A stretch of DNA of 64,000 nucleotides from Neoechinorhynchus agilis (Eukaryota; Animalia; Acanthocephala): assembly GCA_051530055.1 (NCBI GenBank), contig CM121341.1, positions 13,308,784 to 13,372,783 of the forward strand, given 5' to 3'. This document shows, in pieces, positions 15,454 to 55,262 of the stretch. A program made the position numbers and the translations under genes. The notes under the pieces are model-generated. The model searched no databases and was not told the DNA's origin. It worked only from the letters and a program-made list of their open reading frames with translations. Numbering within the stretch: the first letter of the stretch is position 1; every line of letters starts with the position of its first letter.

Positions 15454-16880
15454 TGTATTGTATTGTATTGTATTGTATGCAACGGTACTTTCCTACGTTG
15501 CACAGTAGGTATAAGCCCGTCAAATAGAATTAGACTCCGCAAGGAATCTAAAATACACGACAGCAGTCATGTTATGCGGGCAATTCGCGTCTCTTAAAAT
15601 CAGGTCATCGTATGTACGACAGTTCCCTTTGCCTTTACGATACAATGTCGTTGGCTTCCAGAAAAGGAACTGTTGCACGACCTGTGGGCAAGATGCCTCG
15701 GACCGAATTATATTGCCCGTGAACTGCAGTCGTCTGCGGCGCAAATATTCACTGGGCGGTTGGACTCCGGCTCTCTTATACAGTGCTTTGTTGGTCACTT
15801 TATCTGACCGTCTGACCTTGAACGCCGCACGTAAGAAAGATGAATGATTTTGGTCCAACTGCCTCGTCGCCGTTGCTGACAGTGTCCAGGTCTCTGCGTT
15901 GTAGTAGAGAATGCTCTCAATTAGAGTCCTGAACAACTGCGAACGGAGTTCATCTGGCAAAGACTCACTGTCAAACAGTGGTTTAAGTTGCCCCATTGCT
16001 CTCCAAGCTATAACTCTCCGTCGGCTGACATCCGCACTCACCTCAAGAACGACAGCTCCCAGATAGACATACCGCTCTATCTGTTTTAATTGCCCAACGC
16101 CATTCGGCCCTTCGCCAGAGACTGTATGCGCGACATGCGGAATCGTCAAGAATTCCGTCTTTTTCGAGTTGATGGTCAGACCAATCATACTCGCCCTATC
16201 GCACAGTCTATTTAGCATGCGTTGAGCTCCTTCGACTGTTGAGGACATCAATACGATGTCGTCGGCATATACCATGTAGGAGGCGCGTATCTCAGGATAC
16301 CTGCGACCTCTTTTCCTCAACAGAAGAAATCCATCTTCATCATTCGGTAGTGCCCATCTCATTACCCAATCAAGCACCAAGATGAAGAGGAAAGTAGCCA
16401 ATGTGTCGCCCTGCAGAACGCCTGAAGTGGTGGAAAAGTATTCTGTAAACCGTGCGCTCGCAGACTCCTACAATTCAAGGATCCGATTCGTAGTCCTCTT
16501 CTATTTGAAATAGCTGGGCCAAAGGGCTTACGGCTGTCAGCGCCACCTGAACAGTCCGTACCCACCACGGTGATGAGCTTCGACTGACGCTTTCGTTGCC
16601 TCCGGCGACAGTTTCGCTCATTTCGACGGTCAAGTCTTCGGCGAGAGCTATGACGCCCTCGCTTTTCCCGTTGCACTGATGGGTTTTGTTGCTCCCGTTC
16701 GCTGCCGCATCACCAAGTGGAGCGGCACACCGACCTCGCGTTGACAGGCTACTATCAGTAGCTGTCTGGCCGCCGGAGCTGCTTCTTTCACGTGACCGAC
16801 AAGAATCAGTAACATCAAGTCCGATCCCGTATTTAGCACCCCCTCTCACTGAATGCCTTGATGCTATTTTCATTAAACAT
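15454..16880 (-). mobile_element. Internally deleted RTE element with (ATACA)5 3' tail
   Basis: RT ORF 15520-16401 (GVLQGD, YADD, YLG, YNAETWTL). APE first motif LRIGSLNCRSL is joined directly to the RT at ~16452. (TGTAT)5 at 15454-15478 on the + strand. 5' end approximate. Confidence 0.85.
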
Positions 16881-17867: not shown

Positions 17868-19963
17868 TCATTCTTGATTTAGGGTTTGAACCGTAACACC
17901 ATATGAATTTAGAGGATTTTTAGCGACTGTCAATGATTGAGACAGCAAATTTTGCTGTATGCTTAGTTCGTCCAGTTTAATCCAATAAGACAATCTATCG
18001 GCATCTATCTTTATGAGTTCTCGTTTTTCCCATCCAGCATGGAAAGGACACGAATGTTTTTCAAGCTTACAGCAAAAAACACTTCCATCGCCGATGTAGT
18101 CGAACACATTGTCAATATTTAACGGAAATCCACAAATTGTAGTAGCGCTCAATCGGAGCGATCGGTTCGTATGAGTCGAACATTGACTTTCCATTCGCTT
18201 ACAATAACAACCGTCTGTTAGTGCAATATCGCAGAATAGGTTGGGAATTTCACTCTGTTGGTCTCCACTTAGAATTTCCTGGTCCAAGTTCGAATTCATG
18301 CATTTGTTGATGTGATCCCTCATCGAAGACGCCGGTACTCTGCTTATGCAAATTGGACAACGATACTGATCGACTTTCAGTTTGCCGAACACATTGATAT
18401 GAGGGCGCTCATGAAAGCAAGCATTGTTTATCTCGTCGAATACCCGAAGAAGACGTTCTCGTTTAGAATCTAGATCGGCAATACTGTTCCGTACCTCTTT
18501 CATACGCTCGCTAACCTCTGAAATCTGATGTTCAAGTTCCTTTATGTACCCAACAGCGTGTTCACTTCTACTTGCGTTCTTATACTTCCTTAATTCTTTT
18601 ATGACATGAACCTCAAACTATTTCGTGCTGCTATTTAAACGCAGATCTTAAGATACATTGAGATTGCAAAAAATTTGCCGGATTACTAATATACCCAAAA
18701 GTAAAACATACTCATTGTGGATCAAATCTGGATAAAATGTAAGTAAATCCATCAGCCTACCAATCCATTATCTTCAGAATATTGGGTAAACTCGTTCACG
18801 CAGGCGGTTAGGTAGCTAGGGCACCACTTATCCTTCAAAAAAATCCGGTTCGGTCTAAACTCAAAGAGGATGTGACTCGGTCTCATTGGATAGAAATAAT
18901 TCATTGAAATACGTTGACTTTAAAATAGTTTATCGACCAAGGCAATTCAAATAATAATAAAAAGTTGTTTGTTGATCATAATTTTCCAATTAACATAAAG
19001 ATTGTTTCAACTGCGCGCTGGCTATAGTTTTAGACCGCATTTGTTTCAGTAAGCCTGTGAGGCATAACGGCCCATTCAAAATTAATTTGATTTTCGCGAT
19101 TTTCTTTTCAATTCGAAATTTGGATCCCATTAAAAACCACTGTCTTCAGAGATGTGTAGTGGCGACAAAAATTATGTAAATTTATTGAATCGATATTTCG
19201 GCTCAATCCAGAGCCTATATCAAGATTGTTTGAAATTAAATGAAAGGGAAGAGTTTCCTTTCATTTACTTTCGAACAATCTTGATAAAGGCTCTGGATTG
19301 AGCCGAAATATCGCTTCAATAAATTTACATAATTTTTGTCGCCACTACACAACAATTCTAACCCTTGTATTTTTGGTGATGATAATAATCGAGATTGATT
19401 TATTTCGCCCATCTCTTTTAAATATGTGAGCACGAACTCAGCACGACTGAAGTCTGACGAGACGGACGAAATATTGGTAACGAATAAAATTAGTCTCTTT
19501 TTTCTCAATTACCAAACAAATATATATCCATGGATAATTTTACAACAATTCTAACACTAACATCGCGAAGGATTATCCCTGAACGGAAATGACCAAAAAC
19601 CTGTTAGCGAATCAAAATATAATTTAAGTTTCCCCCATTTTTTGGCTCAAAATGCGAAAATAAAGTTCGAACATATTGGTTTAGAGGTTCACATTTTATA
19701 TAAAAATCGACGCCGCATTCGTCAGAACAGTATCTATTTCCCCGTCGAGCATTGTTCATCGAGCATTTTCGACATCTCGTCGTCGTCTCCTCCCGACGGG
19801 AGCGACAAGATCGTCGCTGCATTTGGTAGAGACTGCGAGTGCTGTTAGATGGCTGTGGCGTACAGTTGACGACAATGTTTAGAGGATACAAGAAGATGGA
19901 TGAAGTCACGATAATGTTGGGCACTGATTCGCAATTGTGGCGTGGTAGGCAAGCCAACATCAA
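17868..19963 (-). CDS. CXXC1: CXXC1/Cfp1 (COMPASS subunit)-like, multi-exon; termini unresolved
   Basis: RCRKC...GNRYCSDECG, plus C-terminal FC...YCKR..C..H, ICGFPL and CPFHAGWEK...IDADRLSYWIKLDEL. Confidence 0.8.
19153..19351. repeat. 83-bp-arm inverted repeat in the CXXC1 intron; each arm carries a U3-A8 hammerhead motif
   Basis: Arms 19153-19235 and 19269-19351, 3 mismatches, 33-bp spacer. Confidence 0.9.
19277..19323 (+). ncRNA. Minimal hammerhead-like motif with U3-A8 core
   Basis: AAUC-UUGAUAA-A-GGCUC(UGGAUU)GAGCC-GAA-AUAU-C^GCUU, then AAUAAA. Confidence 0.6.
19447..19488 (+). ncRNA. Degenerate hammerhead (3-nt deletion in core)
   Basis: CUGAA[---]GUCUG(ACGAGA)CGGAC-GAA-AUAU-U...AAUAAA. 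Confidence 0.45.
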
Positions 19964-20199
19964 CCTCGCCTGATGGATGATGGTCGCAGATCAAAACCAG
20001 TTTTTTAAGAATAAACTGAACCTTTCCCGAATTTGATCTCTATAATCAAAGCTTTTAATTATTTTCGACCATCACATCTTATTCGGCATTTAGGTTATTC
20101 GAATTTTATTTTCTCAGGGTAAAGATGAGAAAATCACTTGTCGAAATCGCATACTAAACGGTCTTTCTATATCTCAGCTACAAATTTAAGCAAAAAAAG

Positions 20200-20264
20200 A
20201 AACTAACCCAGCCATCGGGGTGATTCGGTGCCGGTCCCAAGCTCGGGCAAATGGGGAGGGTTTG
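20200..20264 (+). ncRNA. Twister ribozyme (type P1)
   Basis: U^AA 20204-06; P2 CCCA/UGGG; P3 AUCG/CGGU; P4 CCGG/UCGG closing UCCCAAGC; T1 CCC/GGG; T2 GC/GC; conserved GA at 20256-57; P1 AAA/UUU. Confidence 0.85.
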
Positions 20265-20613
20265 CGTGAAGAAGTCTAATACCTCCGATCGATCGGAATA
20301 GGACGTTTCCTTCGTGCGACGCGCAAACCCGGCGCCCGGGGTTTGTGATGTGTAAAAAAGGCTGATTATTACGAATCCCTAAAACGTGACAGTTGTCAAA
20401 AAAATAGAATTGAACCGCAATGGATCAGTTGTACGACAGTGAAATGCAGAAACCGTTATATATGTATAAAAAAGGTGACATTATCCACACAAAGTCTGGC
20501 CTAATTGAACATTGGAAAGTTCAATTTTGCTCGCTGTCTTCCTGTCCGTTTACATCATATTCACGATATCATGTTCAGTTCTCCACATATCTTAATTATT
20601 TAAATAAATTAAT

Positions 20614-21490
20614 ATGGACGACGAAGATCAAGTAGTCAACTACGGCACGTGCCGGGAGATGCTCGATTCCATTTCTGATAAAGTTGAAGAGTGTCTTAAA
20701 TCAGGCGCTAATGGAAAGACTTTATTAGATTGTATCGAGAAACTTAAAGAATTATCCAGGCATAGCATTGAGCTTGCTCCTAAATGCGCAGTGGTATCAG
20801 CTTTCTGTTACCATCACCTCAACGGAGCTCTCGAACTCGAATTGGGGGATTTAAATCACGCTGTTGCTAAATGGATGGATTTAGACCGAGAAATTCTTAA
20901 ATTAGGGCATGATGTCCATTTCACAGGTCGCTGTATCCGGATGGCGCTTCAGAGGGCAGTTCAGTCTATTGATAAAGCAAAAGCCGGACAAAGCCTAGGT
21001 GTGTATTATCTCCTATGGCTGGCTAGTGTCTCGCCTAAAAAAGAAGCTCCTGATTGTGCCAGAAAAGCCGTTGAACGAATTGATCCGGATAGAGAACCTA
21101 ACGCATGGGTATCGGCTCAACGGTCGCTTGTAACGTATTTGTGTCGTACGGTAAGCATTGGTCACGGGATCAGGGGAAAAAGAGAGTGACCAATGACTGC
21201 TTATTGATCGATTTCAGATGGCAAAAGATGAGAATTTGAAAATGATTGATAATTGCGTAGATGAAGAATGGGCCAAAATAACTGAAATTCTCTTGTCCTT
21301 GATTCTTGAAGTCGAACCGAGTGTTACAATTGATTATGTAAAGATTAAGAACAAGGAATCGCCAGAGATGGATATCAGGAAAATTCGGAATCTGTTCGAT
21401 GATTGCCAAGACAGGCTTGCGATGAAAATCATCAGACGTAAAAAGGAGAACTTGATTGACCCTCTTTTGGTCGGATATAGCATGAAATGA
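20614..21490 (+). CDS. Two-exon ~269-aa helical protein of unknown function
   Basis: Exon 20614-21150, phase-0 GTAAGC...TTTCAG intron 21151-21217, exon 21218-21490 in frame. Confidence 0.7.
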
Positions 21491-23545: not shown

Positions 23546-23585
23546 TATGCTCTTGTTAAAAAAAAATCTTCAGATTGAAAAAAAA

Positions 23586-24755
23586 ATAATCCAAGATATT
23601 TATATTTATCTTGAAATGTTTGGATGAAGCCTCTATAAGAATACAATGAGAATTCTTATATAAACAACGACGATGCATCTAAAATACATTTATATTTATG
23701 TTTTCCCACGAAGATAATAATCCAAGACATTTATATTTCGCTTGAAATGTTTGGATGAAGCCTCTATAAGAATACAATGAGAATTCTTATATAAACAACG
23801 ACGATGCATCTAAAATACATTTATATTTATCTTTTCCCACGAAGATAATAATCCAAGACATTTATATTTCGCTTGAAATGTTTGGATGAAGCCTCTATAA
23901 GAATACAATGAGAATTCTTATATAAACAACGACGATGCATCTAAAATACATTTATATTTATCTTTTCCCACGAAGATAAAAATCCAAGATATTTATATTT
24001 CGCTTGAAATTTTTGGATGAAGCAACGACGATGCATCCAAAGTACATTTATATTTATCTTTTCCCACGAAGATAATAATCCAAGACATTTATATTTCGCC
24101 TGAAATGTTTGGATGAAGCCTCTATAAGAATACAATGAGAATTCTTATATAAACAACGACGATGCATCTAAAATACATTTATATTTATCTTTTCCCACGA
24201 AGATAAAAATCCAAGATATTTATATTTCGCTTGAAATTTTTGGATGAAGCAACGACGATGCATCCAAAGTACATTTATATTTATCTTTTCCCACGAAGAT
24301 AATAATCCAAGACATTTATATTTCGCTTGAAATGTTTGGATGAAGCCTCTATAAGAATACAATGAGAATTCTTATATAAACAACGTCGATGCATCTAAAA
24401 TACATTTATATTTATCTTTTCCCACGAAGATATATATTTCGCTTGAAATGTTTGGATGAAGCCTCTATAAGAATACAATGAGAATTCTTATATAAACAAC
24501 GACGATGCATCTAAAATACATTTATATTTATCTTTTCCCACGAAGATAATAATCCAAGATATTTATATTTCGCTTGAAATTTTTGGATGAAGCAACGACG
24601 ATGCATTTAAAATACATTTATATTTATCTTTTCCCAGGAAGATAATAATCCAAGACATTTATATTTCGCTTGAAATGTTTGGATGAAGCCTTTATAAGAA
24701 TACAATGAGAATTCTTATATAAACAACGACGATGCATCTAAAATACATTTATAAA
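23586..24755. repeat. Satellite of 131-bp and 96-bp units with a 227-bp higher-order repeat
   Basis: ATAATCCAAG-type starts at 23586, 23717, 23848, 23979, 24075 and onward. The duplicated ORFs 23941 and 24168 are 227 bp apart. Confidence 0.95.
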
Positions 24756-51600: not shown

Positions 51601-51672
51601 AGCAGCGTGGCGCAGAGGAAGCGTGCTGGGCTCATAACTCAGAGGTCGGTGGATCGAAACCACTCGCTGCTA
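51601..51672 (+). tRNA. trnM: Initiator tRNA-Met (CAT)
   Basis: A1-U72 pair, 7-bp acceptor AGCAGCG/CGCTGCT, CAT anticodon, initiator-type T-loop ATCGAAA; G30.U40 wobble. Confidence 0.93.
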
Positions 51673-53869: not shown

Positions 53870-54935
53870 TAGTTCCGGAAATTAAACAGATCCAGGTTTG
53901 CCCATAGGGAATTTTCTTGGCTAAGGGCATTAAAGGTCGAAAATGTAAATGTACAAATGCTCAGATGAGGCGTGGCGACAAGCTTCATTGCCTGTGTCAT
54001 CTGGAGGATTGGGCATTCAGGCGCTAGTAGACCTTGCCTTGACAGTGTTTCTTTGATCGTATGAGGGGAGTCGATCAACAGCGAAGAAAATTCTGAGGGA
54101 AAAGTTTTGTCTTGACCAAGACATTGTGGTGGCAGTTGAGGAATGGTATCAGCAGACAGGCGCTAACCATGTTCCCTTGAATGGCCTCAGACAGTCGATC
54201 TGGGACAGACCTCTTTTCGCGAGAGCTCACAGCTCTCTACCTTCAGGTTCTCGCGATGGGGTCGTCCGAGCTAGACTGTTGGCAGTTTCAACACGAGAAT
54301 CTGGGGCGTGGTTGGAGGCTGTTCCTCTGGCATCTGTGGGAACTCCTCTCACTAATGAGGCAACGAGGATCGCAGTGTCCTTAAGGCTTGGTCTCCCGAT
54401 GTGCACGCCCGGTCGCTGTCTATGCGGGTCTTTGTTTGATGCTTTCGGGCGACACGATCTCGTTTGCCGAAAGTCAGGAGGAAGGTTCTCACGCCATTCC
54501 GAGATCAATAGCGTAATTTCTCGGGCGTTGAGAACAGCGAACTTCCCCAACATCTTGGAACCCGCCCATCTTTGTCGACTAGACGGTCGTCGACCTGACA
54601 GAATTTCGGTCTTTTCGTGGCGGGGAGGCAAATGCCTTCACTGGGACGCCACGTTTGCGGACACCCTCGCAATAAGCAACGTTCCCTATTCTCTAGATAT
54701 CGCTGGAGGTGCAGCGGAAGAGACGAAGGTACGAAAATGAGCGCTTGACAGCTCAGCACTCACTCTGCTCCAAGATCTCTCGAGGAAATTGAGAGAAACA
54801 ACCAACGATGCACGAGCAGTTGTATTCCTGCGACAAAATATGTCGCTTGCAGTACAACGAGGCAATGCTGCTAGCGTGATAGCGACAGCCGAGGAAGGAG
54901 AGGAGCTCCAATTTTGCGGACGGCGCTGATTGCAC
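53870..54935 (+). mobile_element. Second CRE-clade copy, degenerate
   Basis: SDEAWRQASLPVSSGGLGI, GAWLEAVP, CLCG...RHDLVC, RPD, WDAT, VQRGNAASV. Confidence 0.88.
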
Positions 54936-55190
54936 GTTTTGTACTTTATTATTTTATGATTAAAAAATGTTATCTTGTTTTTATAAAATCGAATACTTTG
55001 CTATTTATTGTTAAAAGGGACGCGTTTTGTATTCAAATTTCAGCTTCGGAGATTTAAGAGATGTTGAAAATAAGTAAGCGAAATTGTGAAAAAGAACTAA
55101 AGAAAGTATTTCATAAACAAAGAACAATCAAATGTCGAAGAATACAGGAAACCGCAAAAGATTGTCCAGCCGGTGTTCTATTCTCTCTTT

Positions 55191-55262
55191 TAGCAGCGAG
55201 TGGTTTCGATCCACCGACCTCTGAGTTATGAGCCCAGCACGCTTCCTCTGCGCCACGCTGCT
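55191..55262 (-). tRNA. trnM: Initiator tRNA-Met (CAT), mirrored copy
   Basis: Reverse complement of 51601-51672. Confidence 0.93.

Follow-up and report, generated by a model that had tools for sequence, protein, structure and literature searches.

HDV-like ribozymes are found in non-LTR retrotransposons of the R2, RTE and L1Tc types, where they occupy the 5′ end, and canonical twister-P1 ribozymes are those reportedly described by Roth et al. in 2014. For twisters, the closest described system is Perere-3, an RTE-clade element of Schistosoma mansoni that carries T-variant twisters at its 5′ end (Liu et al., 2021, Nucleic Acids Res 49:10573, PMC8501958). The S. mansoni twister variants are co-transcribed with upstream DNA and cleave at N^AA both in vitro and in vivo; the base at −1 is not critical for them, and mismatches in P1 are tolerated (Liu et al., 2021). 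In Perere-3, the target-site duplication abuts the cut site and provides the 5′ strand of P1 (Liu et al., 2021). The same paper also cites the HDV-like ribozymes found at the 5′ ends of non-LTR retrotransposons (Liu et al., 2021).

Here, a twister motif was analyzed in a stretch of 64,000 nucleotides from the acanthocephalan Neoechinorhynchus agilis (hereafter, the window). The segment at 20205–20348 is very probably a dead remnant, the 5′ stub of an RTE-type non-LTR retrotransposon with a twister head. The model developed for Perere-3 fits the N. agilis elements point by point. Both have a type-P1 twister at the extreme 5′ end and, in the sister copies of the window copy, a single open reading frame (ORF) with endonuclease (APE) and reverse transcriptase (RT) parts. 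In both, the N^AA cut marks the boundary of the element, and the 5′ strand of P1 comes from flanking DNA and is hence mismatched. The 3′ strand of P1 reads UUGG in most copies in both species, the L4 loop (GUCCCAAGC) is identical, and many genomic twisters have no RT downstream. The window ribozyme is of the “2A” type (U^AA), a class with canonical-twister-like activity.

The two systems also differ. The host is a platyhelminth in one case and an acanthocephalan in the other, and P2 is CUCC/GGAG in S. mansoni but CCCA/UGGG in N. agilis. Unlike Perere-3, the N. agilis elements form at least three lineages with the same head, and the window copy is a 144-nt stub that lacks an ORF, a tail and a target-site duplication. 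Moreover, cleavage has been shown for the S. mansoni twisters and is predicted for the N. agilis ribozyme. With the HDV-like ribozymes, the twister-headed elements would share co-transcription from upstream DNA, after which self-cleavage would set where the retrotransposon RNA starts; the former adopt the double-pseudoknot HDV fold, whereas the latter have the twister fold, and R2 is site-specific, in contrast to the dispersed N. agilis elements. Finally, the window motif has the conserved core nucleotides and the helices P2, P3, P4, T1 and T2 of canonical twister-P1 ribozymes but differs from them in its weak P1 (two A-U pairs) and in a score below the curated cut-off. The relevant features of the window are as follows.

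17868–19963, minus strand: CXXC1/CFP1-like gene, with a CpG_bind_C domain (PF12269, E 3e-25) in the exon 17868–18539
20200–20264, plus strand: twister-P1 ribozyme motif (RF03160, 54.5 bits, full model), with core helices that pair across 25 copies
20205–20348, plus strand: element remnant, a 144-nt 5′ stub of a lineage A twister-headed RTE-type element (BLAST to the copy L042, 87–88%)
20268–20271, plus strand: junction left by the internal loss of about 53 nt (alignment of 13 copies and BLAST coordinates)
20272–20348, plus strand: conserved element leader (5′ UTR), from repeat homology and the copy alignment
20319–20351 (about), plus strand: GC-rich hairpin GCGCAAACCCGG...GGGGUUUGUG, from folding; conserved in the copy alignment
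20614–21490, plus strand: ACOME3_003111, hypothetical protein of 269 aa, with coding exons at about 20614–21174 and 21218–21490

The twister motif and its structure

A search with the Rfam twister-P1 model (RF03160) gave a full-length match (model positions 1–68) at 20200–20264 on the plus strand, with 54.5 bits and E-values of 9e-12 in a local search of 20100–20400 and 3.3e-10 over the whole 46.2 Mb genome. The score falls short of the RF03160 gathering cut-off of 67.2 bits, which is a curatorial threshold and not a structural feature. All of the genome's matches to this model (at least 44) likewise lie below 67.2 bits, the top score being 60.4, and the window motif is within the top four of 44. 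Because the gathering score is high, the twister was missed by a default Rfam run on the whole 64 kb window, which returned two tRNAs only; an E-value threshold is needed to recover it. The shortfall of the window motif is due mainly to two non-standard pairs in P1 together with a short P3 loop.

In the model alignment, the helices of the window twister are P1 (AAAC/UUUG), P2 (CCCA/UGGG), P3 (CAUCGG/UCGGUG) and P4 (CCG(G)/(U)CGG). All pairs can form in P2 (four of four), P3 (six of six), P4 (four of four, one of them G-U), T1 (two of two) and T2 (three of three), and both pseudoknots can be drawn, T1 as GC with GC and T2 as CCC with GGG. The conserved core nucleotides, namely U^AA in L1, GC, the L4 loop, AAA and GAGGG, are all present. 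Only two strongly conserved model positions depart from the model: in P4, a C is replaced by U and the fourth pair is G-U as a result; ahead of AAA, a U is replaced by C, a change common to many sister copies. P1 has two of four standard pairs in the model register, or can be drawn as three A-U pairs with a bulged C. Its 5′ strand (20200–20203) is flanking host DNA that lies outside the element, and a G-to-U change in its 3′ strand gives one more pair with the flanking AAA. The scissile bond is predicted between U20204 and A20205.

An earlier note on this DNA had stated that all twister pairings (P2, P3, P4, T1, T2, U^AA and GA) can be drawn, that P1 is short with one unpaired C, and that cleavage should occur between 20204 and 20205. 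The covariance-model alignment bears out the pairings, agrees with the description of P1 and places the cut at the same bond; homology between copies also starts at 20205. The Rfam twister-P1 search that the note had proposed as a check thus yielded a full-length match, though one under the cut-off.

The pairing was further compared across 25 genome copies. P2, P3, P4, T1 and T2 pair in 89–98% of cells, compared with at most 52% in a control in which the partners were slid; P1 pairs in 55%. As the genome copies are close kin, there is little covariation among them; double changes occur at three pairs and add no evidence.

The repeat family and its coding lineages

The motif had been taken for a solo twister, which is wrong at the level of the genome: it is one copy of a dispersed repeat family. 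Genome copy number, another of the proposed checks, was found to be at least 44 by the Rfam model search of 46.2 Mb, and a 17-nt core pattern matched at 123 places when up to two mismatches were allowed, vs. 0 places for the reversed control. When 30 loci were compared all against all by BLAST, the homology started at locus position 1506 (window position 20205) in 26–29 pairwise comparisons per copy. Position 20205 is the A that directly follows the scissile bond; in nearly all copies, the cut site is also the boundary of the element. Between copies, the DNA upstream of this point is unrelated, and the base at −1 varies (T, G, C or A), as is expected if it belongs to the target site. The start of all copies at that site provides indirect support for self-cleavage at the predicted N^AA.

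Most copies have a common leader downstream of the ribozyme, and the long copies then continue into Exo_endo_phos (PF03372) and RVT_1 (PF00078) domains. In the sister copies, the two domains lie in one reading direction, in an ORF that starts approximately 100–130 nt past the ribozyme, and the element is approximately 2.9 kb long and has no ORF1. These comparisons were made directly between the element copies themselves. At least three lineages with a common twister head can be told apart among seven extended copies.

Lineage A: copies L041–L043, with mutual homology over approximately 2.9 kb
Lineage B: copies L044 and L045
Lineage C: copies L046 and L047, approximately 70% identical to lineage A

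The 3′ end of lineage A reads ...GAAATNTTGTTGT and carries no poly(A) tail. In all seven long copies, the ORFs are broken over several frames, and all seven are therefore dead. A natural 249-aa endonuclease ORF matches animal proteins at 42–51% identity, and its named relatives are “craniofacial development protein 2(-like)” (CFDP2-like) proteins. Craniofacial development protein 2 carries an RTE-1/BovB-derived endonuclease domain. Together, the architecture (approximately 3 kb, no ORF1, no poly(A) tail and the 3′ end given above) and the CFDP2-like names of the homologues point to the RTE clade, an assignment that is drawn from these two features rather than from an RT tree.

Many members of the family are reduced. 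Among the 30 loci, there are about ten head-only stubs (46–314 nt) and about nine further copies with large internal deletions, and in two loci the head is joined to the tail. The ends of the stubs differ in position between copies, which fits random deletion. In L040 (G000:C1:15778818-15781894) and L013, the 3′ region of the element follows straight after the twister head and leader, giving a length of a few hundred bases. These internal-deletion derivatives could be non-autonomous, SINE-like elements mobilized by the RTE element.

Twister cores are also found in two tandem arrays outside the window. At G000:C2:3484140-3488395 (L048:541-4796), a 151-bp tandem repeat with 28.8 copies and 94% matches carries a variant twister core (GACGGTCCCAAGTCCGG) in its unit. 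No unit reaches E 0.01 with the Rfam twister-P1 model, and the ribozyme of this array therefore looks decayed. In another example, at G000:C1:4573463-4589655 (L049 = 4586800-4590600), twister cores (GACGGTCCCAAGCCCGC) recur approximately every 300 nt on the minus strand, and four units of L049 have weak twister-P1 matches (28–37 bits). This array may be a tandemly amplified head-bearing element.

The window copy and its surroundings

The window copy aligns with the lineage A copy L042 in two blocks: 20205–20267 corresponds to L042 positions 60–122 (87% identity) and 20272–20348 to positions 176–252 (88% identity). Element positions 123–175, which are present in the sister copies, are missing between them. 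The leader block at 20272–20348 occurs at least 18 times in the genome at 75–91% identity, and in other copies lies approximately 55 nt past a twister. The hairpin that had been pointed out at about 20320–20345 does exist; it is, however, no separate feature but part of the conserved leader, and is present in the sister copies. Its fold (−16.5 kcal/mol, z −0.8) is not exceptional for its composition.

Element homology ends at 20348. Past this position, no homology to the element body or tail was found; a homology suggested by MAFFT was rejected, as local alignment scored no better than shuffled sequence. No retroelement ORF was found after the stub, as had been stated before, and the window copy is without the APE/RT coding part. 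The downstream orphan ORF was considered as a decayed RTE ORF and rejected, since tblastn and sensitive blastn searches against the element copies found nothing. Likewise, a head-plus-tail, SINE-like structure was rejected for the window copy because 20349–20620 matches no element 3′ region. No target-site duplication was found beyond A-runs that are common to both flanks (CAAAAAAA at 20191 and 20397; AAAAAAG at 20193 and 20354), which fits loss of the 3′ part of the element by deletion. The window copy is a fragment of a twister-headed RTE-type element and not an element in itself. Of the two origins offered in the earlier note, a leftover RTE 5′ module agrees with homology that starts at the cleavage site and with sister copies that run into an APE and RT ORF. 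The other, a short non-autonomous element, finds no support, given the lack of a tail and of a target-site duplication and the unique sequence after 20348.

The stub lies between two genes that match their earlier description, a CXXC1/CFP1-like gene on the minus strand, recognized by its CpG_bind_C domain, and, on the plus strand, a hypothetical gene that is restricted to its lineage. The latter, ACOME3_003111, is single-copy and has no Pfam family; a word search found no relatives outside N. agilis, and the ESM Atlas gave only weak TPR-like hints for its protein, with low recognition. The twister is in the sense orientation relative to this gene, whose ATG at 20614 lies 409 nt past the cut site, in agreement with the distance of approximately 410 nt given before, and 266 nt past the end of the stub.

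The CpG_bind_C match of the CXXC1/CFP1-like gene is the only one of its family in the genome. An upstream exon of this gene is probable in the ORF 19604–19963, which encodes RYCSDECG and has possible ATGs at 19960 or 19822. No PHD or CXXC domain was matched in the minus-strand ORFs beyond 20200; a genome search for zf-CXXC matched nothing, a result that extended to the control genomes and is therefore uninformative. CpG_bind_C is the only domain seen, with no zf-CXXC or PHD exon found nearby; in this parasite, the gene may have been reduced to a Spp1-like form. Its intron of approximately 1.1 kb contains a duplicated segment of approximately 150–190 nt, visible as similar peptides in the ORFs 19152–19301 and 19236–19508.

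Several other repeats and genes occur in the window. Another retroelement fragment lies at 15463–16401, with an RVT_1 match on the minus strand (ORF 15520–16401); 632 nt of it (15463–16094) share 91% identity with sequence found downstream of the L045 element, and its position and strand are unrelated to the twister stub. A complex AT-rich tandem repeat with periods of 96, 131, 227 and 343 and 84–98% matches occupies 23585–24753, approximately 2 kb past ACOME3_003111; it gives rise to identical spurious ORFs at 23941–24135 and 24168–24362. Two identical tRNA-Met (CAT) genes, at 51601–51672 (plus strand) and 55191–55262 (minus strand), are inverted and 3.5 kb apart. They are presumably of the eukaryotic initiator type, with A1:U72 and GAUCGAAAC in the T arm. 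Between them, 54080–54965 contains repeats akin to sequence that follows the L042 and L043 elements.

Origin of the stub and its significance

For a retrotransposon origin of the stub, the following course of events may be proposed. The live element, which has no demonstrable promoter, would have been transcribed from upstream DNA, and the twister at its extreme 5′ end would have cut the transcript at N^AA, yielding an RNA that starts with AACCC. This RNA would have been reverse-transcribed into new sites by the endonuclease and reverse transcriptase of the element. With the transcript cut at the twister, new copies would begin at the cut site and would borrow the 5′ strand of P1 from the DNA of the landing site. 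The window copy was probably inserted at or near full length (approximately 3 kb): its 5′ end is present, so reverse transcription would have reached the end of the RNA, and a full-length or long insertion is the simplest account. Later deletions would have taken 53 nt out of the leader, together with all of the element past position 252, leaving the ribozyme and leader between the CXXC1-like and the species-restricted genes. Such whittling-down by deletions would be in keeping with the compact 46 Mb genome.

Other explanations of the motif were weighed against this one. That the motif resembles a twister by chance, without descent from a ribozyme, has a vanishingly small probability. The score under the Rfam gathering threshold and the unremarkable minimum-free-energy fold of the window ribozyme (z +1.3) would be compatible with chance, but nested folding is blind to pseudoknots, and an E-value of 3e-10 genome-wide is decisive against chance and effectively refutes it. 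Furthermore, the motif forms part of a repeat family, at its conserved 5′ end, and the family is bounded by the cut site; the reversed-pattern control gave 0 matches against 123 for the pattern itself. It is also unlikely that the window copy was retroposed at its short length, whether inserted as a short RNA, through a premature end or a template switch, or as a non-autonomous SINE-like derivative. Several other copies are indeed short heads of 74–174 nt, the joining of the head straight to the element 3′ sequence in L040 and L013 would suit such an origin, and the end of the stub adjoins an A-rich stretch at which sister copies read GTGAAAAATT. However, a copy with no element tail would leave the reverse transcriptase without anything to recognize, and the flanks share nothing beyond A-runs that could serve as a target-site duplication. 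The varying positions of the stub ends, with their fit to random deletion, and the unrelated 53-nt internal deletion in the window copy also speak against short retroposition.

A further explanation, and a very improbable one, is that the twister has been exapted as a regulatory ribozyme, acting in the 5′ UTR of ACOME3_003111 or in upstream read-through transcripts and thereby setting the 5′ end of the RNA or lowering its level. The sense orientation and the short distance from the stub to the ATG would favor such a role, as would the intact core with its high rank among the genome matches and the additional P1 pair formed with the flanking AAA. In addition, translation was possible after twister cleavage in reporter constructs (Liu et al., 2021). 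Conversely, the mean identity of the window copy to its sister copies is 84.9% for the ribozyme vs. 86.0% for the leader, both values being typical of the family. Conservation of the ribozyme does not exceed that of the leader beside it, and there is therefore no sign of selective retention. The leader has suffered a deletion, and nothing else of the element is left, a state seen in many other stubs of this genome. The four differences between the window ribozyme and the family majority all keep pairing or fall in tolerant positions; selection would give the same pattern, which amounts to weak evidence. From these sequence comparisons, a present-day regulatory role of the twister on the neighboring gene seems very unlikely. 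There is similarly little probability that the twister is both catalytically active and transcribed in sense within the 5′ leader of ACOME3_003111; if this were true, a retrotransposon fossil would trim or destabilize a host mRNA, providing a case of a domesticated twister in an animal. Under the preferred reading, that of a dead retrotransposon stub, the ribozyme core is intact and might cleave if transcribed, and the twister is most likely an inert fossil now.

The arrangement of a twister at the head of an RTE element, together with its mechanism, is already published for S. mansoni (Liu et al., 2021). None of the papers searched links twisters to acanthocephalans or rotifers, and the N. 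agilis genome paper makes no mention of ribozymes (PMC12690905). The present elements add Acanthocephala to the animal groups in which twisters head RTE-type retrotransposons, and what is new is this taxonomic extension, not the kind of element. They also provide an example of a compact 46 Mb genome that reduces such elements to ribozyme-only stubs. For the annotation of “orphan” ribozyme matches, a lone twister near a gene should by default be regarded as a retrotransposon fossil and not as a regulatory ribozyme.
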